Origin: Anthoceros angustus
Lineage: Eukaryota > Plantae > Anthocerotophyta
Direction of reading: 5' to 3'
Assembly (NCBI GenBank): GCA_010909165.1
Contig: VJWM01000011.1
Location: forward strand, 1,426,001 to 1,490,000
Length of the DNA: 64,000 nucleotides
Positions within the stretch are counted from its first letter, which is position 1. The number at the start of each line of letters is the position of its first letter. Positions 1,482-42,824 of the stretch are shown here, piece after piece. The translations under genes and the position numbers were made by a program. Under the pieces are notes generated by a model. That model saw only the letters and a list, made by a program, of their open reading frames with translations. It did not search any database and was not told where the DNA came from.

Positions 1482-2747
1482 ATGGCCACAGCGAAGGCTC
1501 AAGCTTCTTTTCTTCTCTTTGCACGTCATTGGCTTTCAGGCGGGACCCAGCAAATTCCTGCGTGCACAGGGATTCAGCGAGGAGCTCCTGCTAACCTCAT
1601 CTTAGGGAGTCGACCCCTGGCAAGCAAAGCCTCCAGGTGCAGCAGTGTAAGGAGCCCAGCACTTCCTCTTCTGAGAAAGTGTGTGGGTAGGGACGGGTTT
1701 TCCAGCGATGGGCGTTGCCAGGAGCAGGAGCACTTGTGGCAACAATTTTCTCTGGACCCTACCATGTGGTGGGACGACAGACGAGATAAGAAGAGCTCCC
1801 GTTCTCCTGACTTCCGGCGAAAGGGGTCCAGCGAGGTGCTGTGCTTAAGCCAGCTTGGGTTGATGAGCAGCTCATTTCCTTGGATATGCAGATGGGCCAT
1901 GGTGCCAGTGTGAGGAGCCCAGCACTTCCACATCCGATCGGCCCATGCTGCCAGTGGAAGGAGCTCAGCACTTCCACATCCGATGGGCCATGGTGCCTCT
2001 CCTTCCGAGTCCAATCGGAAATGGGCGTCGTTACTGCTGTTACCGTGAGCACGTTACGTCAGCAGGGGAAGCTTTCTGAGGCCGTTGGAGCCCTGGAATC
2101 TCTGGCGCACACAGACTCTCCCATTTCTCAGTCTCTCTTCTACACAGCGAACAAGGATTTGGTTGTGGAGCGACGAGTTCATGATCTCATTGTCAAACTT
2201 GGATAAGAGTCGTGTGCATACTTGCTCACCAGGGTGGGCGAACCAGATGCCTTCATGTGGTTTTCCATAATATCCGCATATGCCAAGCACGCGAAACCTA
2301 ATGAGGCCATACAACTGTATCATGAGATGCGTAGGTCAGGAGTTAAGGCGGATGCTCACGTCTTCGTAGCTGCCCTTCAGGCTACCGACTGCATTGCTGC
2401 CGACTTGGAATGTGGCAGAAAAGTGCGCTTAAGGTAGAGAGCACGAATGCCCGTCAGAAGCAGGAAGGAGGCCAGGTACCTCATACAAAGTTGGTGTTGA
2501 AGCTAATGTCTGAGAAGGAAAAGGAAGATGTGCTTTGCGGGCATGCTGAGAAGCTAGCTCTGGCGTTTGGTTACTTGAACACTGAGTGGGACACCTCTGG
2601 TGGTAACGACGAATCTACGCATGTCAGTGACTGCCACAGTTCCACAGAGATCATGTCAAGGCTTGAACAAAGAGACATTGTGGTAAGGGAGGATACCGTG
2701 TGCATCGAATTGCAGATGGTTGTTGCAGTCGTAAAGGTCAACCGTGA
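1482..2747 (+). pseudogene. Degenerate PDF-motif + PLS-PPR + DYW:KP gene with an internal deletion, frameshifts and stops
   Basis: HLWQQFSLDPTMWWDDRRDKKSSRSPDFRRKG..KPAWVDEQLISLD at 1731-1885. Then GKLSEAVGALE..., EPDAFMWFSIISAYAKH...DAHVFVAALQA (same N-terminal repeats as the intact PPRs at 15.5 and 20.6 kb). Then directly GGQVPHTKLVLK...EKEDVLCGHAEKLALAFG...NLRM(C)SDCHS...IVVR.GYRVHRIADGCCS.KGQP* across ~3 frameshifts. Confidence 0.85.
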
Positions 2748-3794
2748 GAATAATGGAGGACTACCCAGAGCTCAAGCGTGTACTGTGAGGAATTTTGCGT
2801 TTGTGGGGTGAATGTGCTTGGTTAACTCCATCCCTGTCCAAACGGAGACACCAACATGACATACCTCCGGTGAAATATTCTAGACAGATTTAATTGGGAG
2901 ATCGTGGCGACAGTCCGAAATCTCTTCCTTCCAGAAGGACAGGCAGCTGCGGAAGAACAAAAAAGGATTGCTCGATGACATAGTAGTATTAATGCGCAAT
3001 ATTCGGGCCGCCAGAGACATGCGATTTCTCCAAGTTCAACACGGTTGCCATCCACTGCACGACAATATCTGTCTCCAGACCTGCGCACGAAAGAGCAGGC
3101 CAGGTTTTGTGCTCCATGTGCAACAGACACCGGGTGCACGCTTAGCTTTCCACATTCCTGCACCAGAATCAGCAACGTAACCTAAAGTTGTCTCCTGAGG
3201 TTTGCACCTCTGTTTCCTCTGAATCTGTGCTACGCGAGATCCAAAGGACCTGCGTCCTTGAAGGTCGTTCCTCTACTGTACCTGGATGACTGGGTCTATC
3301 TGCCTGATGCAATGCAGCATCCCTGCCGTACCGTTTTAGGCAGACCGTGTTTCATCAGGCAAGGAAAAGTGCAGCAGGGCCACAGGAGACAGCTGAGGAG
3401 AGCAGAGCCTGGAAGCGTGTGCGTACATATGTATAGTTGCTGTTTAAAGGCGCGGGTGGGCCTTCCCTTCGGACACGGCAAACGAGACCAGCGGCAGCAG
3501 AACGAAATTGTCGTTACCAGCAGCAGCAGCTTTGGACTGGAGGCCGGGTAGGGCACACTTGCCGGTGCCACGCCACGCCATCCCACGCCAGCCCAGGCCA
3601 CGCCGTGTCCGAAGCTTGGCACACTGGGCAATGCGGGCAACACAGCTTCACTACAGATACTGACTGCACACACAGACTTCCACATTCTGGTCCCGAAATC
3701 CTCCCCCTTCCAATCATCCGGCGGCGCCTGTCCCACAGACCACTTCGACGGCCCACAACATTTGCCCACACGAGACGCGTATCACTCCTCGGCT

Positions 3795-8623: not shown

Positions 8624-10050
8624 TCGTCTCGGGGTCACAATTTTGTACTAGTAGACTCGTTGTCCTAAATGCACTTGTAACTTTGTGTCTAGGTATGTAA
8701 CAAAAAAAAGCTCTTTATATATAATTTTATCCTTTAAAACTTTGTGCTGTATCACTTTGCAAACCTTCAGCACACAAAGGTTGAAAATCGATTTCGTCAA
8801 GATACGGAAAAAGAGAACCTCTAGGTATTTATGTATATAAAATCATCTTTATATATCAAAAATATTATAATGATTTTATATCATAAAAATAACAAAAATA
8901 TACCGTATATAGTTCCATTCTATGCTGGACTAGGGACAGGACTATAATCACCTGCGGTTGCAATTGTACAGTTTGATCCTATGGGAGATGGATCCAAACT
9001 CAAAAGTTTGACAACATCAGGTGATTCTCCGTTAGTGTAGTACTGATATTGCAATGAGTGTCGAGGCATTAAGACTAATCCATTATCACATATGCTCTTT
9101 CGAAGATCAATAAACTTCTGAGATGTAATATGTAGACCCATGAAAAGTCCGAGCAATTCACACGTATCTTGGGAGCACAATCGCAATCCTTCCTTTTGGT
9201 GAAGCATTATAGAACTCGACCACGTATCTCACTTGATTTGATGTTTCATTTTTTTGTGCTTCATGTGTTAGAACGCCTGCATCCAAACAAATGGGATCCA
9301 CCTTTGGGATGTCTGCAACCAATAAAAAGTTCCAATGTTATTAGAATGGAATGATAAAGCTTTTGTTGTGTCTATAGAGAAAAACACGACTAATTACCAT
9401 TTCCCGCTTCTTGCAAAAAGTCATGATGCGTGTTCTCAAGCTCAGAAACAAGAAAAGAGCGCTTGAGATTGGTGCCTTGCGAAATATCTTCATGCCTATT
9501 CTCGAGATCTGAAACAAGAAGAATACGTTCTTGCTTGTCTTCAAACTTAGAAGTGACATCATTTGTTGCTTGCTTGGTTCCTATTTCAACTCAATCATGA
9601 AGAAAACTAGTCAATGATCACCATACAAAATCTTTACATGTGATGCTATACTCAAGCATATATAATAAAACCATATCTTTTCCAATGTAAAAAACTCGCA
9701 CCTGAGAAACCTTGTTTTAACTCAATCAAAGAATCTAAGTTGTTATACAATGTAATACAACAAAGAATTGTAATCAACATAAAACTTTGCTTGACCCATG
9801 AGATCACCATATTTGGTAGATCAAGAGAAAACAAACAAACAACAAATCATCAAAAGTAGGCAAAGTCATACATATATAGCAAAAAAAAGTAAAAATTCAT
9901 CGATGATGTCTTTTAAGGTTATTTAAATAATTGATAATTTTAAATTTATTTAAAATTATATTATTATTTTTTAAAATACGTTATCTAAGAATAAATATAA
10001 TACATATACTTAAAAATATCTTCTTTCAATCTTTCCTTGATGACGGACAC

Positions 10051-10150
10051 TGTAACCACTAGGCGTTCATTGGAACTCCGTTATTAACCGCAGAATGAAT
10101 GTAACCACTAGGCGTTCATTGGAACTCCATTATTAACCCCAGAATGAATG
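10051..10150. repeat. 49-bp tandem repeat, 2 copies
   Basis: TGTAACCACTAGGCGTTCATTGGAACTCC(G/A)TTATTAACC(G/C)CAGAATGAA at 10051 and 10100. Confidence 0.85.
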
Positions 10151-10709
10151 ACAATGAAGGCGTGGTGTTGGGCAAGGGTTCGTGCAATAAGATGGATAGG
10201 GTTTGAGGCAAAGATGGCCCTTTACTTCAGATCAGGCAGGTACTTAAAGTAATCCTACTAGATAAGAGAAGCTAATTAGCTGCTATGTGTCGGGTACGAT
10301 TGTGGCGCGACTTTTGCTGACGGCCAGCCGGGCGCGCACAATCCCGTGTCGTTGTAGGAAGGAGTCCGTTCCCAAGGGAATGGTCTCGTGCTTATTCCGC
10401 TCGAGCTCTTATCGCCTGAACGGACTTCATCGAGTTGGGTCCGGCTCCACAACCCTAAGTGTGTGCCCTCCACAACTCGTCGGACCGGTAGCACCACCGG
10501 ACCTTCCCACAAACCCCGCCGATTTCTCCAAGATTACCGAACAGTTTAACGACGCTGCCTTCGCCCACGACTCTAGCGCCCGCCCTCAACTCGTCCGCCA
10601 CAACTCCACCTCAACACACACGCCGTAACACGACCCTTCTCCCTTATCCATTCCTAGTAGTCACAACACCAACACGCCGATGTATTCACACCAGCCGCCT
10701 TTGCCCCTT

Positions 10710-10990
10710 CCGGCCGCTTCACGCTCATGGAGAAGTGGCTTGCACTGCATCCCCACCTCCGTTCAGAAGATCCAAGGATGGCTTCCGCCAGTCACCCCAA
10801 GCGCCTCCTAATCCTCCGGCCGCTTCACGCTCATGGAGAAGTGGCTTGCACTGCATCCCCACACCTCCGCTCCAGCCTCCAAGGATGGCTTCCGCCCAGA
10901 AGTCACCCCAAGCGCCTCTAATCCTCCTACCGCTTCACGCTCGGAGAAGTGGCTTGCACTGCATCCCCACCTCCGTTCAGCCTCCAAGGT
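10710..10990. repeat. ~106-110-bp tandem repeat, ~2.6 copies
   Basis: CGCTTCACGCTC(AT)GGAGAAGTGGCTTGCACTGCATCCCCAC... units start near 10710, 10816 and 10926. Confidence 0.85.
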
Positions 10991-11439
10991 TAGTCTCGCA
11001 CCCGAGAAATCACCCGCGAGCACCTCCTGAGCTCAGGTCCGACCCCGGTCTGCACCCATCAAGCGTGTTGGCGGAGCTCGTCACCAGAGCTCTAAACACA
11101 TCCCTCTACCACCAATTAATCCTGCACGGTGACGCAGGAACTCACTCCGCTCCTCGAGCACGGAAGGCAAGAGCACACGGAGCGCGAAGATGGTACCCGG
11201 GATAGTCTGCCGTCTTGGACGCCAGGCCTTCCTATATACTCCCATACCCTAACCTAACCCGCCTATGTATGTATCCTAACCCGCTATGTATGTACCCTAA
11301 CCACAGGTCGTGGTAATCACGGACGTAGCTCATCACCGCGCCGACTTCTTGCACCAGCCTTCCGCCAAACAAGAGATCCATGCCAGCGATGCCCACCAAA
11401 CTAAACCACCCACCGACCACTCGGTTGCCACCGACCTCA

Positions 11440-11825
11440 AGGACGGACCACTCCGACCTCTCAAGGACGGACCACTCCATCGGACCTTGCCCGACGACCA
11501 CCCGTGACCTCGCCGACGGACCACTCCATCGGACCTCGCCCGGACGACCACCCGTCGGACCGCCCGGACCACTCCGACCTCGCCGACGGACCACCCGCCG
11601 GACCTCGCCCGGACGGACCACCCGCCGACCGCCCGGACGGACCACTCCGCCGGACCGCCCGGACGGACCACCCGCCGGACCTCGCCCGGACGGACCACCC
11701 GTGACCGCCCGGACGGACCACTCACCGGACCTCGCCCGGACGGACCACTCCGGACCGCCGACGGACCACCGGACCTCGCCCGGACGGACCACTCCGACCT
11801 CGCCAGACGGACCACTCCGTCTCCA
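11440..11825. repeat. GC-rich degenerate minisatellite (GGACGGACCAC / GGACCTCGCCC cores)
   Basis: More than 10 copies of GACGGACCAC interleaved with CCGGACCTCGCCC. This explains the low-complexity ORFs in all frames here. Confidence 0.85.
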
Positions 11826-12129
11826 ACGGACCGAGGGTCTAGGATTGCACCGTAAGTGCAATCTGGCCGAAAATGGCCTTATTGGCTAACTCCTCCCTAT
11901 CCCTCTTAACAGTAACGACCCGAAAAAAAAGCAAAACAAGCCGCCAAGAGTACGGACATCGGATTTGGCACTCCACAACGATCCTGCGATCCAATACGTA
12001 TCCTAGTTCTTGTGAATCCAATAGTGTATCACGTAGTCTTCACCCCATTCACACTCACACACTAACACACTATGTACTATTCTCAACCCTGTTCACACTT
12101 GTGGAAATGGAAAGCACACACCACTCACA

Positions 12130-15050
12130 CTTCTCACCCATGGATATACATGACAGCTCCTCCCAAGGAAAACAAAGCTTTGTTCTCAAATCCCAAGCAC
12201 CTCTAGTTCATTTTCTATTGCTTAGGCTTGGAGCAGATTGTGGAGGAGTCCCGTGATAAGCCTTGAGAAGTGACACATGAAACGCTGGATGTAACTTTAA
12301 GTTAGAACCCAAGGGAAGAGCAAGTTCATAGGCAGTGTGTCCGATACAACGAAGAATTTTGTATGGACAAAGATTTTGTATGGCCATCAATCAATTTTGT
12401 ATGGCCACAAGTCTGCAGATGGAATGTTGTGGACAAGCAAAGCTAATTAGTACGGAGTGTAGTCTGCAGTGTTGTCCAGTATGAATCGAGGCGTAAAACA
12501 GATATCCTGATCAGTCAACAATGAGCTGGGCAGTCCATGATACCTATAGACTATCTTGAGAAAGAGGTTGACCACATTCTCCACCGTACAAGTCTAAATT
12601 CTTCTTCTTCTTCTTCTCCACCGTACAAATCTTTCGATTTGAAGTAGTATCACCTACCGTGTCAACTAGTTAGTAAATACCAAGAGTGTATCATGTCTTG
12701 TGGCAGTCAATGGAAGACCCATGATGAAGACCTGATCCCATGGTAGCGCCGGAATTGGCAACGGTTGTAGTAGGCCAGTTGGTTTCTGTCTGTTGGCCTT
12801 GATTCGCTGACAGCAAGTGCATAATAAGTTGACGCAGTTTTGGACAACCCCGCCGATTGTGTTCTAAAAAAACATTCGCTGCACCTTTTGTATCGTCCGA
12901 AGGATGCCTTGGTGAGAAGTAGATATAGCATTGTGAGCTTCAGATATGATAGCATGCTGGATCTGTGGTTAAAAAGTCTACCTTCATACCATAACATGTA
13001 GACATCAACCTGTGTCCACTTGCTGACTGCTGCTGCAATATCCTGAATAGCTACCTGTGCTATTGGGTCCATTTGCATTTAACGATGTTAGATGCTTGCC
13101 TCGCTATGCCTACAACCAAGTTCTGTCTCCCATTCACATACCTCATAGTGTACTGGTATGTTGCAGGAGCTCCAACCACTAGCTAGTCTGATTTCGCAAG
13201 AGTGTTGACTGAGTCTGCAAATAAACCATAGGGCAGTGGTCGGTTTCAAGTTCGAATTGAGAGCCCTCCAGAATAAAGCACCGCCAGTGCTTTAAGGGCC
13301 AAACTTGTGTGAGTGTTTCCTTCTCACCCATGGATATACATGACAGCTCCTCCCAAGGAAAACAAAGCTTTGTTCTCAAATCCCAAGCACCTCTAGTTCA
13401 TTTTCTATTGCTTAGGCTTGGAGGCATTGTGGAGGAGTCCGTGATAAGCCTTGAGAAGTGACACATGAACGCTGGATGTAACTTTAAGTTAGAACCCAAG
13501 GAAGAGCAAGTTCATAGGCGTGTCCGATACAACGAAGAATTTTGTATGGACAAAGATTTTGTATGGCCATCAATCAATTTTGTATGGCCACAAGTCTCAG
13601 ATGGAATGTTGTGGACAAGCAAAGCTAATTAGTCGGAGGTAGTCTGCGGTTGTCCAAGATGAATCGAGGCGAAATGATATCTGATCACCAACAATGAGTC
13701 AAGTCCATGATACCTATAGACTATCTTGAGAAAGAGGTTGACCACATTCTCCACCGTACAAGTCTAAATTCTTCTTCTTCTTCTTCTCCACCGTACAAAT
13801 CTTTCGATTTGGGGCGAGTATCACCTACCGTGTCAACTAGTTAGTAAATACCAAGAGTGTATCATGTCTTGTGGCAGTCAATGGAAGACCCATGATGAAG
13901 ACCTGATCCCATGGTAGCGCCTTGAATTGTAGTAGGCCGCTTGGTTTCGTCATCTGGCCTTGATTCGATGAAGTGCATAATAAGTTGACGCAGCTTTTGG
14001 ACAACCCCACCGATTGTGTTCTAAAAACATTCGCTGCACCTTTTGTATCGTCCGAAGGATGCCTTGGTGAGAAGTAGATATAGCATTGTGAGCTTCAGAT
14101 ATGATAGCATGCTGGATCTGTGGTTAAAAAGTCTACCTTCATACCATAACATGTAGACATCAACCTGTGTCCACTTGCTGACTGCTGCTGCAATATCCTG
14201 AATAGCTACCTGTGCTATTGGGTCCATTTGCATTTAACGATGTTAGCTGATGCAGTTGTGCCCTGCTAAGGGCGTCTACAACCAAGTTCTGTCTCCCATT
14301 CACATACCTCATAGTGTACTGGTATGTTGCAGGAGCTCCAACCACTAGCTAGTCTGATTTCGCAAGAGTGTTGACTGAGTCTGCAAATAAACCATAGGGC
14401 AGTGGTCGGTTTCAAGTTCGAATTGAGAGCCCTCCAGAGTAAAGCACCGCCAGGGCTTTAAGGGCCAAACTTGTGTGAGTGTTTCCTTCTCACCTGTTGG
14501 CCAATTCAGCCCAGCATGCTTGAGCTTTTAAGAATAGTACGCAATGGGCTGTTGTCTTTCCTAAAAGTCTTGTCGCAACACAATTCGCACGACCAAGTCG
14601 ATGCATTTGTTGTGACAATGAACGTTCTGTCAGCATCGTGGTAAGACAATTAACTAGAGGTGAGGCAACTTGTTGAGGGCTAGCCTAGGTCCAGGTTGCT
14701 TCATGCTGTAGCTGTTGCGACATTAGTGGTGCACGTCGGTGAGCAAAGTTGCAATCAAACTTATGGTAATAAGATGCTAGCTCCACAAAGCTATGTAACT
14801 TGGAGATACCTAGACAGGGACAGGCCACTGTTGTATTACTTGAACCTTAGCAGGGTCTAGTTGGATGCGTCAATAACATGTCCAAGATATTCCAGTTGGT
14901 TTTGCAGAAACTTACATTCAAAAGCATGGACGTAGAGTTTAACAATCTAGGGATATTGTATTAAATATTGGCACAAGGGTATTCCTTCTAGGCTTTATTT
15001 TCAAGATCTTTAGAATGATCTACCATGATCTAATATACCCCAAATATATT
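12130..15050 (-). mobile_element. Ty3/gypsy pol remnant (end of RT, RNase H, integrase), containing a ~1.19-kb tandem duplication
   Basis: Minus strand: LEYLGHVI..DPAKVQVIQQWPVP, FIVTT, QPIAYYS, ELETDHCPMVYLQTQ, YVNGRQNLVVDALSR, EAHNAISTSHQGILRTIQKVQRMFF (integrase H2C2), IGHTAYELALP...LHPAFHVSLLKAY. 12131-13325 is repeated at about 13321-14494. Confidence 0.88.
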
Positions 15051-15096: not shown

Positions 15097-15410
15097 CTTC
15101 TTAGGCCAAATGGACACACATCTATACAAACGCCGTTATTAAGCATCCGGTGCTTAGATCGATACTTAGATAGGGTGCCTAAAGGGAGTGGATGCTCTTA
15201 GTGCAAGTAGCTTAGGCACACCATGGTACAAGTATCAAGTATACAAACGCCGTTATTAAGCATCCTGTGCTTAGATCGATACTTAGATGGGGTGCCTAAA
15301 GGGAGTGGATGCTCTTAGTGCAAGTAGCTTAGGCACACCATGGTACAAGTATAAGTGCCATGACGGAAGTTCTCTGTGGACTATAATAGAAGTCTCCTTT
15401 CCTTCTTCTT
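15097..15410. repeat. Dispersed non-coding element, copy 1, with an internal 117-bp tandem duplication
   Basis: CTTAGG(C/T)CAAATGGACAC...TTAAGCATCC...GGGTGCCT(A/G)AAGGGAGTGGATGC...GCAAGTAGCTT..GGCACACCATGGTACAAGT is shared with 24693-24905. The internal unit repeats at 15124 and 15241. Confidence 0.8.
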
Positions 15411-15548
15411 TCATTTAACCGAAGAGAGGTGCGGGTCAGTGGCCAGGTAGTGTAACCGAAGGGAGTTGTGGGTCAGTGTATTTCATGTCCAGGTAGTGTA
15501 GTGGCGTGTGCCCGATACATTCATATTCTCAGCTCATGCACCGAGCAA

Positions 15549-18500
15549 ATGGGCGTCTGGATTGGGTCGGGCAAAGGGCAGCAGGAGCCAGTGCTGGGAC
15601 AGTTATCGTTGCGCGAGCGAATTGGTGGGTTAAGACGTAGACTACCAAGGTCTCCTGCCCAATTGAATTCAAAGAGGCCACGGTTGAGAAACAAGCAGTC
15701 TGGGACGTGCTCATTAGCAGCAAAGCCAGCTCGTGGAAGAGGATATGTTGCTGCAGATGGCCCTTCCAGCGAGGGTCGACGGCAGGAGCTCTTGTGGCGA
15801 CAATTCTTTCGGGACCCCACGCTTTGGTGGGACAGCAGGCAAGATAAGCAGAGCGACCGTTGGCCTAACTTCCGGCACAAAGAGTCCCAGGAGGTCCTCT
15901 GGTTGAACAGCTTCTCCAAGCCGGGTTGGGTGGATGCCCAGCTTGCTGCTCTGGATGTGGAGGTGTCGGGTGATCCTGGCCCTCGCAGGCCTGCAGGATA
16001 CGAAGTGGGCGTGACTGCTGCATCCGTGGCCGAGCTGTGTGGTGAGGGCGACCTCGCTGAGGCTGTTGAGGCTCTGGGAGTTCTGGTGCAGGCAGACTGT
16101 CCTGTTGCCAAATCTCTGTTTTATACTGTCTTGAAGAAATGTGTGGCGAAGAGGAATCTTGTTCTGGGTCGCCACGTCCATGCCTTGATGGTGAGAAGAG
16201 GGTACCAGTCGGACACGTTCCTGTGCAACCACATTCTAAGAATGTATGCCTCGCATGGCACGTTGCAGGACGCAATGGATGTGTTCTCCATGGTTGCCGA
16301 ACCAGATGCCTTCTTGTGGTCTTCCATAATTTCTGCGCATGTGAAACACGGACAAGACAAGCAGGCCGTAGACCTGTATCAGCGGATGCGCAGGTCAAGT
16401 GCGAGGGCAGATGGGCATGTGTTTGTGGCAGCTCTTCAGGCTTGTGCAAGGGGGTCTGACTTGAAAGCTGGGCAGCAGGTGCATGCTGATGTGTTGGCTA
16501 GTGGCACTCAGCTTGATTTGTTTGTCTCTAGCTGCTTGGTGGACATGTATGCCAAGTGTGGCAGCTTGGAGGATGCTCAGAAAGTGTTTGACGGACTTGG
16601 GCAGAAAGATGTGGTGACATGGACTGCTCTGATTGCAGGGTATTCCCAGCAGGGCAGGGGTCAGGAAGCCCTTTCTCTTTACAGGGCTATGCAAGAAGAA
16701 GGCATCGCGGTACCCAATGCTGTGACATTCCTCTGCCTCCTACAGGCATGTGCCAGTGTGGGCTCTCCAGCTTTGGAGATGGGGAAGCAGCTCCACGCAC
16801 AAGTCAGAGAACGAGGACACCAGGCCGATGAGTTTGTAGGTAGCGGGTTGGTGAACATGTATGCAAAGTGTGGCAGCTTAGAAGAAGCACAAAGAGTCTT
16901 TGACGGTCTTGTGCAAAAGGATGTGGTGACGTGGAATGCTATGATTGCGGGGTACTCCCAGCAGGGCATGGGCCAAGAAGCCCTAAGTGTTTACAGTTGT
17001 ATGCAAGAAGAAGGGATCGCTGTACCCGATTCTGTCACATTTGTGTGCGTGCTACAGGCATGTGCCAGTGTGGGCAACCCAGCTTTGAAGATGGGAAAGC
17101 AGCTTCATGTCCAACTTAGAGAGCAAGGACATCAAGCTGATGCCTTTGTAGCCAACAGTTTGGTAAACATGTATGCAAAGTGTGGCAGCCTAGAGGATGC
17201 TCGAAGAGTGTTTGACGGTCTTGGTCAAAAAGATGTGGTGACGTGGACGGCCCTGATCGCAGGATATTCCCAGAAGGGCATGGGCCAAGTAGCCCTTCAC
17301 CTCTACAGTGTTATGCAACAAGAAGGTATCGCTGTGCCCAATCCTGTGACATTTGTTTGCCTTCTGCAAGCATGTGCTAGTGTGGGCACACCAGCTTTGG
17401 AGATGGGAAAGCAGCTTCACGGGCAGATTGTAGAGGGAGGGCATGAAGGTGACGTGTTTGTGGCCAACAGTTTGGTATACATGTATGCGAAATGTGGCAG
17501 CCTTGAGGATGCCCAAAGACTGTTTGATGGACTTGGTCAAAAAGATGTGGTGACGTGGACTGCCATGATCGCAGGATATTCCCAGCAGGGCATGGCCAAA
17601 GAAGCCCTTCATCTATACACAGCTGTGCAAGAAGAGCGGATCAATGCAACCAACTCCATGACTTTTGTGTGCCTCCTGCAGGCATGTGCAAGCATGGGCA
17701 CCCTAGCGTTGGAGAAAGGGAGAGAACTTCATGCACAGATTAGAGAACAAGGTTTTCAAGCTGATGTGTTTGTAGGAAGCAGTTTGGTCAACATGTATGC
17801 AAAGTGTGGCAGCTTGGAAGAAGCTCAAACGGTGTTTGATGGACTTGGCCAAAAGATGTGGTTACGTGGAATGCCATGATATCGGGTATTCCAGCAGGGC
17901 ATGGGCCAGGAAGCCCTTCTTCTTTACGGTAGTATGCAAGCAGAAGGAATCACCTCACCCAATTGTGTGACATTTGTGTGCCTTCTTCAGGCATGTGCCA
18001 GTGTGGCAGCCCAGCTTTAGAAGTGGGAAGCAGATGCATGCTCAAATCAAAGAACGAGGACATCAAGATGGCATGTTTGTAGCCAGTAGTTTGGTCAACA
18101 TGTATGCCAAGTGTGGCAGCTTGGAAGATGCACACAGACTATTTGACGGACTTGCTCAAAGACATCGTGACATGGAATGTCATGATAGCAGGGTATTCCC
18201 AGCAGGGCATGGCCAAGAAGCCCTTCATCTATACACAGCTGTGCAAGAAGAGCGGATCAATGCAACCAACTCCATGACTTTTGTGTGCCTCCTGCAGGCA
18301 TGTGCAAGCATGGGCACCCTAGCGTTGGAGAAAGGGAGAGAACTTCATGCACAGATTAGAGAACAAGGTTTTCAAGCTGATGTGTTTGTAGGAAGCAGTT
18401 TGGTCAACATGTATGCAAAGTGTGGCAGCTTGGAAGAAGCTCAAACGGTGTTTGATGGACTTGGCCAAAAAGATGTGGTTACGTGGAATGCCATGATATC

Positions 18501-20376
18501 GGGGTATTCCCAGCAGGGCATGGGCCAGGAAGCCCTTCTTCTTTACGGTAGTATGCAAGCAGAAGGAATCACCTCACCCAATTGTGTGACATTTGTGTGC
18601 CTTCTTCAGGCATGTGCCAGTGTGGGCAGCCCAGCTTTAGAAGTGGGGAAGCAGATGCATGCTCAAATCAAAGAACGAGGACATCAAGATGGCATGTTTG
18701 TAGCCAGTAGTTTGGTCAACATGTATGCCAAGTGTGGCAGCTTGGAAGATGCACACAGACTATTTGACGGACTTGCTCAAAAAGACATCGTGACATGGAA
18801 TGTCATGATAGCAGGGTATTCCCAGCAGGGCATGGGCCAAGAAGCCCTTCATGTCTACAGTGTTATGCAAGAAGAGAGCATGGCTGTACCCAATTCTGTG
18901 ACATATGTGTGCCTCCTGCAGGCATGTGCTAGTGTTGGCACCCGAGCTCTGGAGAAGGGTAAGCAGCTTCATTCAGAAATCCGAGAAGGAGGTCATGAAA
19001 CTGATGTCTTTGTAGCCAACAGTTTGGTGAACATGTATGCGAAGTGTGGCAGCCTGGAAAGTGCTCACAGAGTGTTTGCGGGGCTTAGTAAAAAGGATGT
19101 GGTTACATGGAATGCCATGATAGCAGGGTATTCCCAGCAGGGAATGGGCCAGGAGGCTCTGTCTCTCTACAGCTCTATGCAAGAGCATGGCGTAGCAGTA
19201 CCTGACTCTGTAACATTTGTGTGCCTACTTCAGGCATGTGCCAGCATAGGCACCTCAGCATTGGAAAAGGGGAGGCAGCTTCACGCGCAGATAAGAGAAC
19301 AAGGACACCAAGCTGATGTATTTGTAGCCAGCAGCCTGGTGAACATGTATGCTAAGTGTGGCAGCCTAGAGGATGCTCAGAGAGTGTTTGACGGACTGGG
19401 GGAGAAAAATGTTGTGACATGGAATGCCATGATAGCAGGATATTCCCAGCAAGGGATGGGCCAGGAAGCCCTTCGTATGTATGGTGCTATGCAAGAGGAA
19501 GGCATGGCTGTTTCAAACGCCGTCACGTTCGTGTGCCTGCTGCAGGCTTGTGCAAATGTGGCAGCGTTGAACCTGGGACGACAGCTACATTCACAGATCG
19601 TAGAACAAGGGCTTCAAGCTGATGTGTTTGTAGGTGGCAGTCTGATCAATATGTATGGCAAGTGTGGGAGCATGTCTGAGGCGCAGCAAGTGTTCGATGC
19701 ATTATCCAAACCAGATGTCGTCGCCTGGAGTGCTCTGATTGCAGGCTACACCTCTCAGGGAGACAGTGAAGTAGTCTTTGACTTGGTCCAGAGAATGAGA
19801 TATGATGGCGTGTGGCCTGTCGGGATCACATTCCTCAGTGTACTAACAGTGTGCAGTCACGCAGGTCTTGTAAACAAGGGGAGAGGGTACTTCGATTCTA
19901 TGACCAGAGAGTATGGCATCAGCCCCACTGTGGAGCACTACACATGCATGGTGGATCTCCTAGGCCGGACAGGCCTGGTGGATGAGGCACTGGCTTTGGT
20001 GAGCACTATGCCTGTACTGCCTAGTGCTGCACTTTGGCACACTCTGTTGGGTGCCTGTCAAAAGTGGAGTGACGTGGCGGTGGGACGACATGCTTTCGAC
20101 GAAGCCGTGAAGCTGGACAACAAGGATCCTGCAGCGTATGTATTGATGGCAAACATATACACCGGTGCTCAGATGTGGGAGCGGGCAAGGGAGATGCAGG
20201 CCATGAGAAGGAGAATCAGGGCTCGGAAGCAGGCCGGTCAGAGCTGGTGGGCAGACGACGAAGGTATCGTGCATAGTTTTTTGGTAGCCGATAGAAGAAT
20301 TGTGATAAGTAACGATGTTATAATACAACAGACATTACAATCCGTAATAGTTCTAAGAGACCATTCCTCCGTCTGA
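15549..20376 (+). CDS. PLS-class PPR protein 1: N-terminal PDF motif, ~32 PPR motifs, E1/E2 and a WW-type PG-box region, no intact deaminase. Split in this assembly by a faulty 616-bp duplication (17601-18216)
   Basis: ORFs 15468..17879 and 17974..20376 carry repeating P (DVVTWNAMIAGYSQQG), L (NSVTFVCLLQAC) and S (DVFVASSLVNMYAKCGSLEDA) motifs, then P2-L2-S2 (HYTCMVDLLGRTG), E1-E2 and KQAGQSWWADDEGIVHSFLVADR. Joining 15549-17600 to 18217-20376 gives one in-frame 1403-aa ORF. The start codon is uncertain. Confidence 0.93.
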
Positions 20377-20638
20377 GATCTGTTCATGGCTGTGCTTGAC
20401 GATCCCAATATGAAGGGGCAGTCTTACAAGAACTTTCCCTCGCGCCCGGCTTTCGAGCATCGGTCGTGGACTCCATGGGTGGCAGCATTTCCCAACGGTG
20501 AGGCGTTTTCAATGCAAACGAGTTCAGACCTCACAGATAGAAGGCAAAATAGCCGAAAGGACTAGGAGCTATGAGCACAAGGTGCTGCAGCATTGGCATC
20601 ATAGCCGGCAAGATCATCCGGAGCCCTGGAGTCCTTAA

Positions 20639-23600
20639 ATGCACATTTCCATGGCTGCCTGGAGTGTTGCAAGACAGGACCCGTTGTGGGATCAGGCTTC
20701 GTGGACCCGACGACGTCATCGGTTTACAGCTACCGTAGGAAGGGCTCCCGCTCATCTGGCTTTATGGAGCCAAGCTTCGGGAAACAACCAAGGTGCATGC
20801 TGCTGCACTAAGACACCCAGTCCAAGAGGATGTTTGTCTGGACACGAATCTTCCAGCGAGGGTGGTTGCCAGGAGCTCTTATGTCTAGATTCACAGATGC
20901 TCGTGCTGAATGGTTTCGTGAAGCCAGGTTTGGGGGATGGGAAGCTTGTTGCCCCTGCTCGTGATGTAGAGATGGGCCATCGTGCCTCTAAATTCAAATG
21001 GAGCTTGGCGGAGGATCCTGATCCTCGCAGGCCTGCAGGATACGAAAGGAGTGTGACGGCTGAATCCGTGAGCAGGCTGTGTCGTGAGGGTTACCTCGCT
21101 GAGGCTGTTGAGGCTTTGGGAGTGCTGGTGCAGACAGAGTGTTTTATTAACACAGCTCTTTTCTATACTGTCCTGAAGGAGTGTGTGTTGAAGAAAGATC
21201 TTATTCCGGGTCGCCGCCTCCATGCTTTGATGGTGAAAAAGGGGTACCAGTCGGATACGTTCCTGTGCAACCACATACTGCGGATGTATACTTCGCATGG
21301 TAGGTTGCAAGACGCGATGGATGTGTTCACCATGGTTGCCGAACCAAATGCCTTTATGTGGTCTTCCATAATTTCTGCGCATGTTAAAGATGGAAAAGAC
21401 AAGCAGGCCATAGAACTGTATCATGAGATGCGCAGGTCAAGTGTCGAGCCGGATGGGCATGTGTTTGTGGCAGCCCTTCAGGCTTGTGCAAGGGGATTAG
21501 ACTTGGAAACCGGCAAGCAGGTGCATGCTGATGTGTTGGCCGTTGGGGCGGAGCCTCACTTGTTTGTCTGGAATAGCTTGGTAGACATGTATGCAAAATG
21601 TGGCAGCTTGGAAAACGCTCAAAGAGTGTTTGATGGACTTGGTCAAAAAGATGTGGTGACGTGGACTGCCCTAATTGCAGGGTATTCTCAGCAGGGCATG
21701 GTCCAGGAAGCCTTTCGCCTCTACAGTACAATGGAAGCAGAAGGCATCGCTGTACCAAATGCTGTAACGTTTGTGTCTCTCCTGCAAGCATGTGCAAATG
21801 TAGGCAGCCCAGCTTTGGAGAAGGGGAAGGAGCTTCATGCGCAAACTAGGGAACGAGGATATCAGGCTGATGTGTTTGTGGCAAACAGTTTGGTAAACAT
21901 GTATGCAAAGTGTGGGAGCATGGACGATGCTCAGAGAATGTTTGACGGCCTTGTTCGAAAAGATGTGGTGACATGGACTGCTCTAATTGCAGGGTATTCC
22001 CAGCATGGAAGGTGCCAAGAAGCCCTTGACCTCTATGGTATTATGCAAGAAGAAGGCGTTGCTATACCCAATTCCGTGACGTTTGTCTCCCTCTTGCAGG
22101 CTTGCGCTGGAGTGGGTCCCCCTGCATTGGAGAAGGGGAAGCTGCTTCATACACAGATTCAAGGAGAAGGACTCGAAACTGATATGCTCGTAGCCAATGG
22201 TTTGGTGAACATGTATTCAAAGTGTGGTAGCTTGGAAGACTGTCGAGCAGTATTTGATGCACTCGAGACAAAAGATGTGGTGACGTGGAATACCATGATA
22301 TCTCTGTATTCCCAGCAGGGCAAGGGCCAAGAAGCGCTTCATCTTTACAGCGCTATGCAAGAAGATGGCAAGGCAGTGCCGGATATTGTGACATTTCTGT
22401 CCCTACTGCAGGCATGTGGAATTGTGGGATCCCCAGCTTTGGACAAGGGAAAGCAGCTTGATGTGCAGATCAGAGAACGAGGCCATCAAGGTGATGTGTT
22501 TATAGGCAGCAGTTTGGTAAGCATGTATGCGAAGTGTGGCAGCTTACAGGATGCTCAGAGAGTGTTCCATGGGCTTGGTGAAAAAAATGTGGTGACTTGG
22601 AATGCCATGATAGCAGGGTATTCCCAACAGGGCATGGGCCAGGACGCCCTTCAGGTGTACAGTGCTATGCAAGAAGATGGCATGGCAGTACCAAGTGCTG
22701 TGACGTTTGTGTGCCTCCTGCAGGCGTGTGCAAGTGTGGGCAGCCCAGCGTTGGAGAAGGGGAAGCAGCTTCATTTGCAAATCAGACAGCAAGGGTTTGA
22801 AGGTAGTGTGGTTGTTGGCAACAGTTTGGTGAACATGTATGCCAAGTGTGGCAGCCTTGCAGACGCTCAGGATGTATTTGATGGACTTTGTGAAAAGAAC
22901 GTGGTGTCATGGAATGCCATGATAGCAGGTTATTCCCAGCAGAACATGGGGCAGGAAGCCTTTGGTCTCTACAGTACCATGCAACAAGATGGCAGCGTAG
23001 CACCGGATTCTGTAACATTCACGTGCCTCCTGCAGGCATGTGCAAGCATGGGCAGCCCAGCTTTGGAGAAGGGTAAGCAGCTTCATGAACAGATTAGAGT
23101 AGGAGGACATGACGATGATGTGTTTGTAGCCAGCAGCTTGGTAAACATGTATGCAAAGTGTGGCTACCTGGAGGGTGCCCAGAGAGTGTTTGACGGTCTC
23201 GGTCACAAGAATGTGGTGACATGGAATGCCATGATAGCAGGGTATTCCCAGCAGGGCATGGGCCAGGAAGCCCTTAGTGTCTACAGTGCTATGCAAGAAG
23301 GTGGTATTGCTGTATCGAATTCCGTGACGTTTATGTGCCTCCTGCAGGCATGTGCGAATGTGGCAGCGTTGGATCTTGGAAGGCAATTGCATGCAGAGGT
23401 TCAACAACAAGGGCTTGAGGCTGATGTGTTCGTTGGTGGCAGCCTAATAAACATGTATGGCAAGTGTGGGAGCATGGTTGATGCACAGGAGGTGTTTGAT
23501 GGGTTGTCTGAAAGGGACGTCGTCTCCTGGAGTGCACTGATTGCAGGCTACACCTATCAGGGAGACAGTGAAGTGGTCTTTGACTTGGTTCAGCGCATGA

Positions 23601-24097
23601 GAGACGATGGCGTGCCCCCAGCCGGCATCACATTCCTCAGTGTACTAACGGTGTGCAGTCATGTGGGTCTTGTGAACAAGGGGAGACAGTACTTCGATGC
23701 TATGACCAGAGAGTATGGCGTCAGCCCCACGGTGGAGCACTACACTTGCATGGTGGATCTTCTGGGCCGTGCAGGCCAACTGGGTGAGGCACTGGCTTTG
23801 GCAAGGACAATGCCTGTACTGCCCAATGCTGCAGTTTGGCATACATTGTTGGGTGCTTGTCGAAAGTGGAGCAACGTGGAGGTGGGATACTATGCCTTTA
23901 ATGAAGCCCTGAAGCTAGACGAGAAAGATGCCGCAGCATATGTATTGATGTCAGGCGTATACACGGGTGCCGAGATGTGGGAGCAGGTAGAGGAGATGCA
24001 GTCAAGGAGAATGAGAATCGGCGCATGGAAGCAGGCAGGTCAGAGCTGGTGGGCAGACATGGACGGACGGGTGCATAGTTTTTTGGTCGGGGGATAA
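20639..24097 (+). CDS. PLS-class PPR protein 2 (~26 PPR motifs, E1/E2, WW-type PG-box region, DYW truncated); tandem paralog of PPR 1
   Basis: Single 1152-aa ORF with 8 S motifs (MYxKCG-type), P2-L2-S2, E domains, ending WKQAGQSWWADMDGRVHSFLVGG*. Confidence 0.95.
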   Translation: MHISMAAWSVARQDPLWDQASWTRRRHRFTATVGRAPAHLALWSQASGNNQGACCCTKTPSPRGCLSGHESSSEGGCQELLCLDSQMLVLNGFVKPGLGDGKLVAPARDVEMGHRASKFKWSLAEDPDPRRPAGYERSVTAESVSRLCREGYLAEAVEALGVLVQTECFINTALFYTVLKECVLKKDLIPGRRLHALMVKKGYQSDTFLCNHILRMYTSHGRLQDAMDVFTMVAEPNAFMWSSIISAHVKDGKDKQAIELYHEMRRSSVEPDGHVFVAALQACARGLDLETGKQVHADVLAVGAEPHLFVWNSLVDMYAKCGSLENAQRVFDGLGQKDVVTWTALIAGYSQQGMVQEAFRLYSTMEAEGIAVPNAVTFVSLLQACANVGSPALEKGKELHAQTRERGYQADVFVANSLVNMYAKCGSMDDAQRMFDGLVRKDVVTWTALIAGYSQHGRCQEALDLYGIMQEEGVAIPNSVTFVSLLQACAGVGPPALEKGKLLHTQIQGEGLETDMLVANGLVNMYSKCGSLEDCRAVFDALETKDVVTWNTMISLYSQQGKGQEALHLYSAMQEDGKAVPDIVTFLSLLQACGIVGSPALDKGKQLDVQIRERGHQGDVFIGSSLVSMYAKCGSLQDAQRVFHGLGEKNVVTWNAMIAGYSQQGMGQDALQVYSAMQEDGMAVPSAVTFVCLLQACASVGSPALEKGKQLHLQIRQQGFEGSVVVGNSLVNMYAKCGSLADAQDVFDGLCEKNVVSWNAMIAGYSQQNMGQEAFGLYSTMQQDGSVAPDSVTFTCLLQACASMGSPALEKGKQLHEQIRVGGHDDDVFVASSLVNMYAKCGYLEGAQRVFDGLGHKNVVTWNAMIAGYSQQGMGQEALSVYSAMQEGGIAVSNSVTFMCLLQACANVAALDLGRQLHAEVQQQGLEADVFVGGSLINMYGKCGSMVDAQEVFDGLSERDVVSWSALIAGYTYQGDSEVVFDLVQRMRDDGVPPAGITFLSVLTVCSHVGLVNKGRQYFDAMTREYGVSPTVEHYTCMVDLLGRAGQLGEALALARTMPVLPNAAVWHTLLGACRKWSNVEVGYYAFNEALKLDEKDAAAYVLMSGVYTGAEMWEQVEEMQSRRMRIGAWKQAGQSWWADMDGRVHSFLVGG

Positions 24098-24692: not shown

Positions 24693-24905
24693 CTTAGGTC
24701 AAATGGACACCCATTTATAAGAACGTCGTGATTAAGCATCCTGCGCTTTCATCGGTACTTAGATGGGGTGCCTGAAGGGAGTGGATGCCCTTGTTGCAAG
24801 TAGCTTTTGGCACACCATGGCACACCATGGTACAAGTTGTTAAGTACCAAGTCCCACGACGGAAATCCATCCTTAGTGGACTTAAATAAAATTCTTCTTC
24901 TTCTT
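24693..24905. repeat. Dispersed non-coding element, copy 2
   Basis: Homologous to 15097-15410 (single internal unit here). Confidence 0.8.
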
Positions 24906-41695: not shown

Positions 41696-42018
41696 GGGTA
41701 CACAACTAGGGTGTGAACCCTAACTATGTTCCGTTTGTGTGTACACAACTAGGTGTGAACCCTAACTATGTTCCGTTTGTGTGTACACAACTAGGTGTGA
41801 ACCCTAACTATGTTCCGTTTGTGTGTACACAACTAGGTGTGAACCCTAATTATGTTCCGTTTGTGTGTACACAACTAGGTGTGAACCGTAACTATGTTCC
41901 ATTTGTGTGTACACAACTAGGTGTGAACCCTAACTATGTTCGGTTTGTGTGTACACAACTAGGTGTGAACCCTAACTATGTTCCGTTTGTGCGGATCACA
42001 ATTAGGGTTCACACCCTA
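41686..42018. repeat. 42-bp minisatellite, 7 copies, closed by an inverted copy of its first 15 bp
   Basis: Unit GGTGTGAACCCTAACTATGTTCCGTTTGTGTGTACACAACTA. GGGTGTGAACCCTAA (41709-41723) and TTAGGGTTCACACCC (42002-42016) are perfect reverse complements, each with an outer TA. Confidence 0.93.
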
Positions 42019-42824
42019 TGGTCAACCATCATGTCTTATAGAAAAGGCATTCCCTTAAATATAAAAAGAACATTCATTTCATATGTGATCAATTAAGTAA
42101 TTTAATATAACATTTCTTTGAATTAGTCTCTTTGATCATGAAAGTTTACTTCATGGTATCATAGCTTGGTAATATATAATAACTTTCTCTTTTAAAAATG
42201 AGTCTTTTTAGAAGAAAAAATTATTTTTTAATTAGATACCAAAATGAATCAATTTTATTTTGAAAATATTTTAAAGGCTGTTCTGAAATTATAGCCTTCC
42301 AAAAGAAATCAAAATTTTCTTAATTTTTATTTTAGAAATAGGCATGATATTATTTTGAATAATAATAAGAAAAAGAAATATAATAATTTAAATTATATTC
42401 AAGAATTAGATAATGAATATCATCTTGACTCTCTAGAAAGAAAGATAGATTCTATCCAATCTAGAATTAATATCTTTATAGAGCATATGGATTTATTCAA
42501 TTATCATATTAGAAATTTAATTTCTGATTTTAATCTAGCAATTAAATCTAACAAAATTGATACCAAGACTCAATCTTAAAGTTCTCATTAAAGTTTTTTT
42601 TTAGGAAGTTGTTTCTTTCTCACTAAACACTTTCTTCATTTAAAAGTTCTCTTCTAATTAGAATTTTAAATCTTCCTTTATTACTAAGGTAACTATTTTT
42701 CATAAACAGACAATTCAACTTGGTTAAGATTAGTTTAGTTAAGATCAGTTAAGATAAGTTAAAATTAATTTTATTTTCTAAGATAGCCTATTTATTTATA
42801 CAAAAAAAAAAGAAAAAAATAAAT

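Follow-up and report, generated by a model that had tools for sequence, protein, structure and literature searches.

An OSB-type PDF domain at the N-terminus of a PLS-class PPR protein in a tandem gene family of the hornwort Anthoceros angustus

In a 64,000-nucleotide window of the Anthoceros angustus genome, the whole stretch of DNA analysed here, a PLS-class PPR gene carries ahead of its repeats a motif that, by sequence comparison, is a true homologue of the PDF domain of OSB proteins. Other genes share the fusion, and the same combination occurs in several seedless lineages. With a probability of roughly 0.6, the whole is best explained by an organelle-targeted PDF-PPR protein in which the PDF domain would serve as a single-strand clamp. 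PPR editing factors attract intensive study, and programmable RNA base editors are being built from them. The inventories of their domains derive from Pfam-type scans, and for want of a PDF model in Pfam a folded N-terminal domain of these proteins has been overlooked.

The gene and its PDF domain

The first-pass annotation had proposed, from the letters alone, that an OSB-type PDF motif is fused in frame and without an intron to the N-terminus of a PLS-class PPR protein. Translation of 15789-15956 on the forward strand gives exactly the 56 residues it had quoted. The motif lies in an unbroken ORF of 803 codons (15468-17879, forward strand), and this single ORF, from its first ATG at 15549, continues from the motif into repeats that Pfam recognises as PPRs, which bears out both the in-frame fusion and the missing intron. 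The position described as just before the first PPR repeat corresponds to a gap of about 20 residues. The next in-frame ATG, at 16188, lies downstream of the motif. The features are collected in Table 1.

Table 1. Features of the PDF-PPR gene and its two neighbours, in positions of the window
Feature	Position	Strand	Basis or remark
Paralogue A, collapsed pseudogene	1482-2811	+	ORF list, alignment, profile
PLS-class PPR gene with PDF domain (paralogue B)	15549-20376	+	two ORFs
Presequence, probable organellar targeting peptide	15549-15767	+	first ATG; R/G/S/L-rich
OSB-type PDF domain	15768-15965	+	encloses 15789-15956; profile, phmmer, AlphaFold
Linker, Pro/Gly-rich, flexible	15966-16016	+	between PDF domain and first PPR-like helix pair
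PLS-class PPR array, first part	16017-17879	+	Pfam PPR_2 1.5e-73, PPR 2.9e-65
Frame-breaking segment	17583-18210	+	copy of 18199-18834
Second ORF: more PLS triplets, E1, truncated E2, stop	17974-20376	+	800 codons
Paralogue C, intact 1152-residue PLS-E ORF	20639-24097	+	ORF list

The presequence of some 73-80 residues has a net charge of +12 over residues 1-80 and an AlphaFold pLDDT of about 31 at residues 1-72 of a 405-residue model; it is a probable organellar targeting peptide. The linker of about 15 residues is likewise poorly ordered in the model (pLDDT below 50 at residues 139-152), and helices begin at residue 157 with pLDDT above 90. The P-L-S triplets that follow recur with a period of 312 nt, in about 10-11 units at 75-83% identity. 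In the second ORF, Pfam recognises PPR_2 (5e-84) and E_motif (7.8e-10, residues 698-758), and the end of E2 reads as a PG-box-like ‘QAGQSWW...VHSFLV’ at 20230-20286, shortened by the stop.

These tandem P-L-S triplets and the E1/E2 extension place the gene in the PLS class, but not among the PPR-DYW enzymes. Neither ORF has a Pfam match to the DYW deaminase (PF14432, with its HxE and CxxC zinc site), and translations of 20300-20700 contain nothing DYW-like in a region where only 260 nt precede the next gene, which begins at 20639. The earlier label of editing-factor-like thus holds for the PLS-E part of the protein and fails for the deaminase, which is absent, and for the frame, which is interrupted as assembled. 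Neither ORF has a Pfam match to the SSB domain (PF00436) either. Since it lacks the SSB OB-fold and carries its PDF at the N-terminus, the gene has an OSB-type domain but is no OSB.

The identity of the domain was scored with a profile made exclusively from OSB proteins (29 PDF motifs from 16 named angiosperm OSB proteins, Arabidopsis OSB1 among them). The segment matches it over profile positions 8-64 of 66 with 61.5 bits and E 3.9e-18, so the OSB-type identity proposed at first reading is upheld by a significant HMM match. A phmmer search of 1.84 billion proteins with the 63-residue segment returned 520 matches at E<=1e-3, 121 of them at E<=1e-10, and these matches include OSB1 orthologues (for example P0012 at 2.8e-33), a protein named organellar ssDNA-binding protein 3 (an OSB3 orthologue) and P0047, an OSB protein with a Pfam SSB domain and two PDFs. 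In an alignment of 66 PDF sequences, the segment keeps all three invariant columns and 13 of the 14 nearly invariant ones, and its conserved aromatic and basic residues are retained. The sole departure among the nearly invariant columns is P-N-F where the family has P-D-F, a triad that is present in a related organism's contig and in paralogue A. A word-indexed search for homologues of the motif region, within the 803-residue ORF, came back empty, since the motif has diverged too far to have 5-mers in common with its relatives. Pfam, NCBIfam and PDB sequence searches left it unmatched because they contain no model or structure of the PDF domain.

The predicted fold consists of a helix, two to three short strands and a second helix, with a pLDDT of 92.9 for the domain alone and 86-93 for residues 74-139 of the 405-residue model. 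A shape search of the ESM Atlas gave TM scores of 0.92-0.94 to PPR, DYW and SSB-family clusters, 0.92 being that of the SSB family; three PPR/DYW clusters of 57-127 members each score 0.84-0.94. Against solved structures, Foldseek found no match to the domain model at E<=0.001, and the best wide Z from VIA-align was only 3.3. The PDF fold has no counterpart among solved structures from which a binding mode could be argued.

Could a tryptophan-rich stretch merely resemble the PDF motif by chance? The shortness of the motif is all that speaks for this reading. The E value against the OSB-only profile, the 121 strongest phmmer matches in so large a database, and a confident fold prediction that resembles an SSB-family cluster leave it a vanishing probability, and the profile and the exhaustive phmmer search together rule it out.

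The ESM Atlas shape search also gave two tailed-phage clusters at TM 0.69-0.73, and an Atlas feature search gave Phage_gp49 (PF25690) clusters at 0.77-0.81, under that tool's reliability line. A possible phage relative was followed on this lead and is unsupported: Foldseek against BFVD gave nothing significant, the best tblastn hit in 50,697 phage records had E = 6, and an hhalign comparison between the PDF alignment and mycobacteriophage L5 gp49 reached a probability of 0.5%.

Paralogues, frame breaks and conservation

The PDF-PPR gene is one member of a tandem nuclear gene family. The PDF motif of paralogue A (1719-1853), with a canonical S-P-D-F, is broken by a 13-nt deletion, and its C-terminal part resumes in another frame at 1847-1894; the OSB-only profile still matches its first half with 48.5 bits and E 4.5e-14. 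The rest of paralogue A consists of PPR remnants and a KP-type DYW remnant (‘HAEKLA’, 2536-2691). In paralogue C, the PDF region at 20870-20965 is shortened and degenerate, without a match to the PDF profile, and the ORF ends inside E2 without a DYW. The motif is thus lost in two of the three paralogues of the window, both of them neighbours of the gene, and it may therefore be dispensable at this locus.

The frame of the PDF-PPR gene itself is interrupted in the assembly. Three-frame translation shows the reading frame hopping within 17.85-18.2 kb, and the repeat spacing in the frame-breaking segment is 307 and 309 nt compared with the usual 312. The segment and its copy, about 0.6 kb in length, differ by homopolymer-length indels at six places and by no substitution at all. 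Because homopolymer length is the only difference in an otherwise identical duplicate, the frame breaks are probably errors of long-read assembly or polishing, and not decay. The duplicate itself probably either arose in the same way or is real but very young, with errors that polishing left in place. No exact public contig spans 17.85-17.89 kb.

A 701-nt contig from a related organism aligns to the locus with no indels. It has a single substitution in the 168-nt motif and 22 in the 366 flanking nucleotides (Fisher p 0.002), and the PDF domain is more strongly conserved than its flanks. The one change in the motif replaces the N of this copy by the canonical D, while the presequence differs at 19 nucleotides and 14 amino acids. 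Public contigs of the same organism match the motif sequence exactly. Their run types were guessed, with contig ends that coincide in DNA and ‘RNA?’ runs, and their depth beyond 16.03 kb is swamped by PPR paralogues.

Spread of the fusion in seedless plants

A search for PDF-PLS fusions elsewhere, which the first-pass annotation had suggested, found them in liverwort, moss, lycophyte and fern proteins as well as in a hornwort-type DYW:KP protein. The carriers are Sphagnum species (DYW:PG), Calypogeia, Diphasiastrum, Selaginella, Adiantum and, as transcripts, Pteridium, and all PDF-PPR proteins with an identified species come from a liverwort, moss, lycophyte or fern. The nearest relative, with 62-64% identity in the motif, is P0076, an intact Logan protein of 753 residues with a hornwort-type DYW:KP and a probable hornwort origin. 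The DYW domain is present both in P0076 and in P0087, another relative, and the PDF occurs on C-to-U-type and U-to-C-type factors alike. The PDF-PPR fusion is an old and widespread design in seedless land plants.

PDF domains are also found fused to a kinesin motor and in arrays that reach 13 copies. A tree from only 66 columns is weakly resolved, but the angiosperm OSB PDFs form a well-supported clade in it, and the PPR-linked PDFs fall outside that clade.

The searchable plant papers that use the term ‘PDF motif’ yielded no link to PPR proteins. PPR is absent from a 2026 survey of the OSB family, and a kingdom-wide survey of domain fusions in editing factors, also from 2026, mentions neither OSB nor single-strand binding. 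The architecture, for which the first reading knew of no functional description, seems to be undescribed in the searchable literature.

A putative clamp, its rivals and related systems

A PPR array and the RNA that it binds run parallel, and the N-terminal repeats contact the 5' nucleotides. After removal of the presequence, the mature protein would begin with a folded PDF domain, about 65 residues long, which a flexible linker of some 15 residues would connect to the first PPR helices. By analogy with OSB proteins, the domain would most likely clamp single-stranded nucleic acid independently of its sequence, just 5' of the PPR footprint. Such a clamp would strengthen binding or hold the target in an unfolded state, and its ligand could be the RNA itself or nearby single-stranded organellar DNA. 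The locus copy has no DYW, so it would read RNA at best, and catalysis would be needed in trans.

Passages on OSB proteins in two reviews (PMC6963530, PMC4166229) state that the PDF motif of AtOSB1 is sufficient for ssDNA binding, that OSB1 and OSB2 favour ssDNA over dsDNA or RNA, and that AtOSB2 has been reported to form tetramers. Given this reported preference of OSB PDFs for ssDNA, a clamp on RNA is an extrapolation. The preference, and the part of the PDF motif in mediating the binding, instead favour a domain that would bind organellar ssDNA, be it in transcription bubbles, in R-loops or in intermediates of replication and recombination, and not RNA; it would keep the PPR protein at the nucleoid, where the protein would meet its RNA co-transcriptionally. 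The agreement of the key residues with OSB PDFs is consistent with such tethering, and in the predicted structure the PDF sits on a flexible linker, which would leave it free to reach another strand. However, the place of the PPR-linked PDFs outside the angiosperm OSB clade, albeit in a weak tree, suggests that specificity may have shifted, and the position of the domain beside the 5' end of the bound RNA would make that RNA the nearest ligand. A tether to nucleoid DNA is unlikely. A domain that oligomerises, or that recruits partners such as OSB-like proteins or a trans-acting deaminase, without binding nucleic acid is improbable. The tetramers of AtOSB2 would fit it, the kinesin fusion and the long PDF arrays suggest a versatile module, and paralogues B and C, being without DYW, would need a partner. 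But no biochemical activity other than ssDNA binding has been reported for the motif, and its invariant W, F, R, K and H are suited to stacking on bases and contacting phosphates.

The gene at this locus could also be a non-functional duplicate in which the PDF motif has merely not yet decayed, and then no function could be inferred from this copy. The absence of a DYW, the stop inside E2 and the frame that is interrupted as assembled all fit a relic, as do the collapse of paralogue A through the deletion in its motif, the degenerate motif of paralogue C, and the change from D to N in the P-D-F triad. Against this, the frame breaks are all homopolymer-length differences between copies that agree everywhere else, a pattern that marks sequencing error and not decay; the gene has two clean ORFs (803 and 800 codons) outside the duplicated segment; and the motif is the best-conserved part in the comparison with the related organism. 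A relic is therefore a doubtful reading, though one to be reckoned with. Seed-plant editing uses trans-acting helpers such as MORF/RIP, and to our knowledge MORF genes have been reported from seed plants only. The PDF may be an ancestral cis-acting single-strand clamp of seedless-plant PLS editors and the counterpart of MORF/RIP, but this is speculative and the odds are well against it. If it were true, native DYW:KP (U-to-C) editors and C-to-U editors of these lineages would perform best when they carry the domain, and synthetic editors that lack it would miss a functional part. If the PDF aids target binding, nucleoid localisation or complex assembly, the picture of a minimal editosome in seedless plants would change, and the OSB toolkit for DNA maintenance would be directly linked to RNA editing. 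The locus itself carries a smaller message, with its deaminase absent and apparent frameshifts that look like assembly errors.

Three known systems share parts of this architecture. OSB proteins have the same domain of 55-65 residues, with W, F, P, WWD-R, K, P-(D)-F, HK, LW and P-W-V positions in common. Unlike the locus protein, they combine a central SSB-like OB-fold with one to five C-terminal PDFs, whereas here a single N-terminal PDF, with P-N-F instead of P-D-F, is attached to a PPR array and there is no OB-fold. The PLS editing factors, such as PPR-E/DYW:PG proteins (for example moss PPR56) and the DYW:KP proteins of hornworts and ferns, have the same PLS array with E1/E2, an organellar-type presequence, an intronless ORF and the 312-nt period; the locus gene differs in its folded domain before the repeats, in the stop within E2 and in the lack of a DYW. 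Accessory domains of Physcomitrium PPR proteins include RRM (PPR4), SMR, LAGLIDADG (OTP51), NYN (PRORP), CBS and SAP (PMC9459714). These fusions follow the same principle, in that an RNA reader built of helical repeats is coupled to another module related to nucleic acids, but they are mostly P-class and the PDF is absent from the list, whereas the fusion at the locus is on a PLS-class protein of the editing type.

The closest likeness in plan is to the public PDF-PPR proteins. Selaginella XP_024517303, Sphagnum compactum CAM6033764, Adiantum KAI5076972, Diphasiastrum KAJ7517631, the Calypogeia fissa proteins and P0076 share a common layout of presequence, one to three PDFs and PLS array. E and DYW usually follow the array and most of these proteins are intact, unlike the locus copy. 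They are annotated merely as PPR or hypothetical proteins, and their PDF part goes unnamed.

Homology of the motif and spread of the fusion

Pfam, NCBIfam and the PDB lack any model or structure for the PDF motif, so homology was tested directly. The first-pass annotation had proposed an OSB-type PDF motif fused to a PLS-class PPR editing-factor-like protein, and the 56 residues it quoted are identical to the translation of window 15789-15956 (+). A phmmer search of 1.84 billion representative proteins with a 63-residue segment (15774-15962) returned 520 proteins at E<=1e-3, including 121 at E<=1e-10. Many, at 330-470 residues, have two or three matching stretches close to the C-terminus; P0047 has a Pfam SSB domain and then two PDFs. 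Another match, P0012 (E 2.8e-33), has 91% identity to a protein annotated as "protein OSB1, mitochondrial", and the annotations of P0048 and P0052 read organellar ssDNA-binding protein 3 and OSB1-like. An OSB-only profile of 29 PDF motifs from 16 named angiosperm OSBs, Arabidopsis OSB1 included, was the check proposed beforehand; it matched the window segment with 61.5 bits (E 3.9e-18, profile positions 8-64 of 66), and in the six-frame translation of the window its only other match is a second copy at 1719-1853. Within a 66-sequence PDF alignment the motif keeps 3/3 invariant and 13/14 nearly invariant columns, the sole change being Asn for the Asp of P-D-F. Matches, profile and column conservation together bear out the OSB homology. 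In a weakly resolved tree of this short domain, angiosperm OSB PDFs form one supported clade (100/98), with PPR-linked PDFs outside it.

PPR repeats are also present on 14 proteins among the best 150 of the 520 matches, with one to three PDFs that are always N-terminal; no seed-plant PDF-PPR protein is among those examined. Searching again with a fusion protein from Sphagnum gave 25 proteins, all with PPRs. The fusion occurs in mosses (several Sphagnum species), a liverwort (Calypogeia fissa), lycophytes (Diphasiastrum complanatum and Selaginella moellendorffii) and ferns (Adiantum capillus-veneris, and transcripts of Pteridium aquilinum, where it is present in mRNA). The nearest relative of the window motif, P0076 from a public assembly, is an intact protein of 753 residues: a presequence and a PDF come first, then PLS repeats and E motifs, and last a KP-type DYW domain whose end reads GRP. 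Since P0087 from Sphagnum has a canonical DYW:PG domain, the PDF domain is found on both C-to-U-type and U-to-C-type factors. Judged from these sequences, the fusion is an old one with a wide distribution.

Proteins that are neither OSB nor PPR carry PDF domains too, among them P0037 (Coptis chinensis KAF9616283) and P0001 (Kingdonia uniflora KAF6142360). A 1526-residue kinesin has three PDFs N-terminal to its motor domain, and tandem PDFs, up to 12-13, make up some whole proteins; the kinesin and tandem proteins could be gene-model fusions.

The gene and its neighbours

Coordinates of the PDF-PPR gene, its paralogues and other features of the window
Feature	Window position	Description
PDF-PPR gene	15549-20376 (+)	ends inside E2, no DYW domain after it
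First ORF of the gene	15468-17879	stop-free, contains the motif
Second ORF of the gene	17974-20376	E motif (Pfam)
0.6-kb duplicate	17583-18210 and 18199-18834	exact copies except homopolymer-length indels at six places
Paralogue A	1482-2811 (+)	collapsed PPR gene, most repeats deleted
Motif of paralogue A	1719-1853	canonical P-D-F, broken by a 13-nt deletion
Paralogue C	20639-24097 (+)	intact 1152-codon PLS-E ORF
PDF region of paralogue C	20870-20965	shortened, degenerate
113-118-nt element	15123-15352	two tandem copies (97-98% identical) directly upstream of the gene
113-118-nt element	24693-24824	3' of paralogue C, 85% identity
0.5-kb duplication	12843-13328 and 14000-14494	upstream, 96% identity
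Compositional outlier	10001-12000	GC 0.58, GC skew -0.24
Compositional outlier	42001-44000	GC 0.34

In the motif ORF the first ATG lies at 15549; the second in-frame one, at 16188, is 3' of the motif. Pfam finds strong PPR matches in both ORFs, no DYW deaminase in either and no match to the PDF segment itself. The frame is lost at ~17.85-18.2 kb. Because the 0.6-kb copies differ in homopolymer length only, with no substitution in their alignment, the break suggests long-read error, in a segment that was duplicated wrongly or polished poorly, rather than decay; the real gene probably has an open frame.

Paralogue A retains, 3' of its motif, a remnant of a KP-type DYW domain ("HAEKLA", degenerate CxDCH region). 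KP-type remnants like this one, and P0076 as a hornwort-type nearest relative, suggest that the window comes from a hornwort. The PDF of paralogue C has no match to the OSB-only profile. Paralogue C stops inside E2, as does the neighbouring gene, so the DYW domain seems to have been cut off by the tandem duplication unit. Of the three paralogous genes in the window, only that at 15549-20376 still has its PDF domain intact, and not one encodes a complete editing enzyme.

Fold and constraint

AlphaFold, with the 66-sequence alignment, predicts the PDF domain alone at pLDDT 92.9, as a helix, short strands and a helix. In a 405-residue model from the ATG, pLDDT is ~31 over residues 1-72, 86-93 over 74-139, <50 over 139-152 and >90 from residue 157 on; net charge is +12 over the first 80 residues. 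Our reading of the model is a disordered targeting-type presequence, a folded PDF domain, a flexible linker of ~15 residues and the PPR superhelix.

Searches of solved structures detected no counterpart of the fold. In the ESM Atlas the shape matches one SSB-family cluster at TM 0.92 and, at TM 0.84-0.94, three clusters of PPR/DYW proteins with 57-127 members each. The domain model (15774-15962) also has shape neighbours there among clusters of tailed-phage hypothetical proteins (TM 0.69-0.73) and feature neighbours in Phage_gp49 (PF25690) clusters (0.77-0.81); Foldseek on BFVD, a tblastn search of phage genomes and an hhalign comparison with L5 gp49 did not support a phage relative.

Contigs of the same organism match window 15471-16080 exactly. 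A 701-nt contig of a related organism spans 15504-16204 without indels, and the differences listed for it up to 16037 number 23: 19 in the presequence (14 amino-acid changes), 3 in the linker and 1 in the 168-nt motif (Fisher p 0.002), where it has the canonical Asp in place of Asn. Such a distribution agrees with a cleavable presequence that evolves fast and, behind it, a domain under constraint.

Putative role and standing

What might a PDF domain do beside a PPR array? In AtOSB1 the PDF motif is by itself enough to bind ssDNA, and OSB1 and OSB2 prefer ssDNA to dsDNA or RNA (PMC6963530, PMC4166229). On RNA, the N-terminal repeats of such arrays contact 5' nucleotides, and the short flexible linker to the first repeat would hold the PDF domain at the 5' border of the footprint. 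There it may act as a sequence-independent single-strand clamp, lending extra affinity or keeping the target unfolded, and this would be its most economical role. Alternatively, the domain could tether the protein to nucleoids or ssDNA. Further alternatives are a protein-interaction module or, in this particular copy, a functionless relic.

Plant papers in the searched literature that speak of a "PDF motif" make no link to PPRs. PPR is not mentioned in a survey of 182 OSB genes from 2026, nor are OSB or single-strand binding in a kingdom-wide survey, of the same year, of domain fusions in editing factors; PDF is absent from the accessory domains of moss PPRs listed in one review (PMC9459714). 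On the literature searched, the architecture is provisionally judged to be undescribed. The PDF-PPR fusion is real and ancient, a variant of PPR architecture that seems to have gone unreported and whose role is putative; the gene at 15549-20376 is a DYW-less member with assembly problems.
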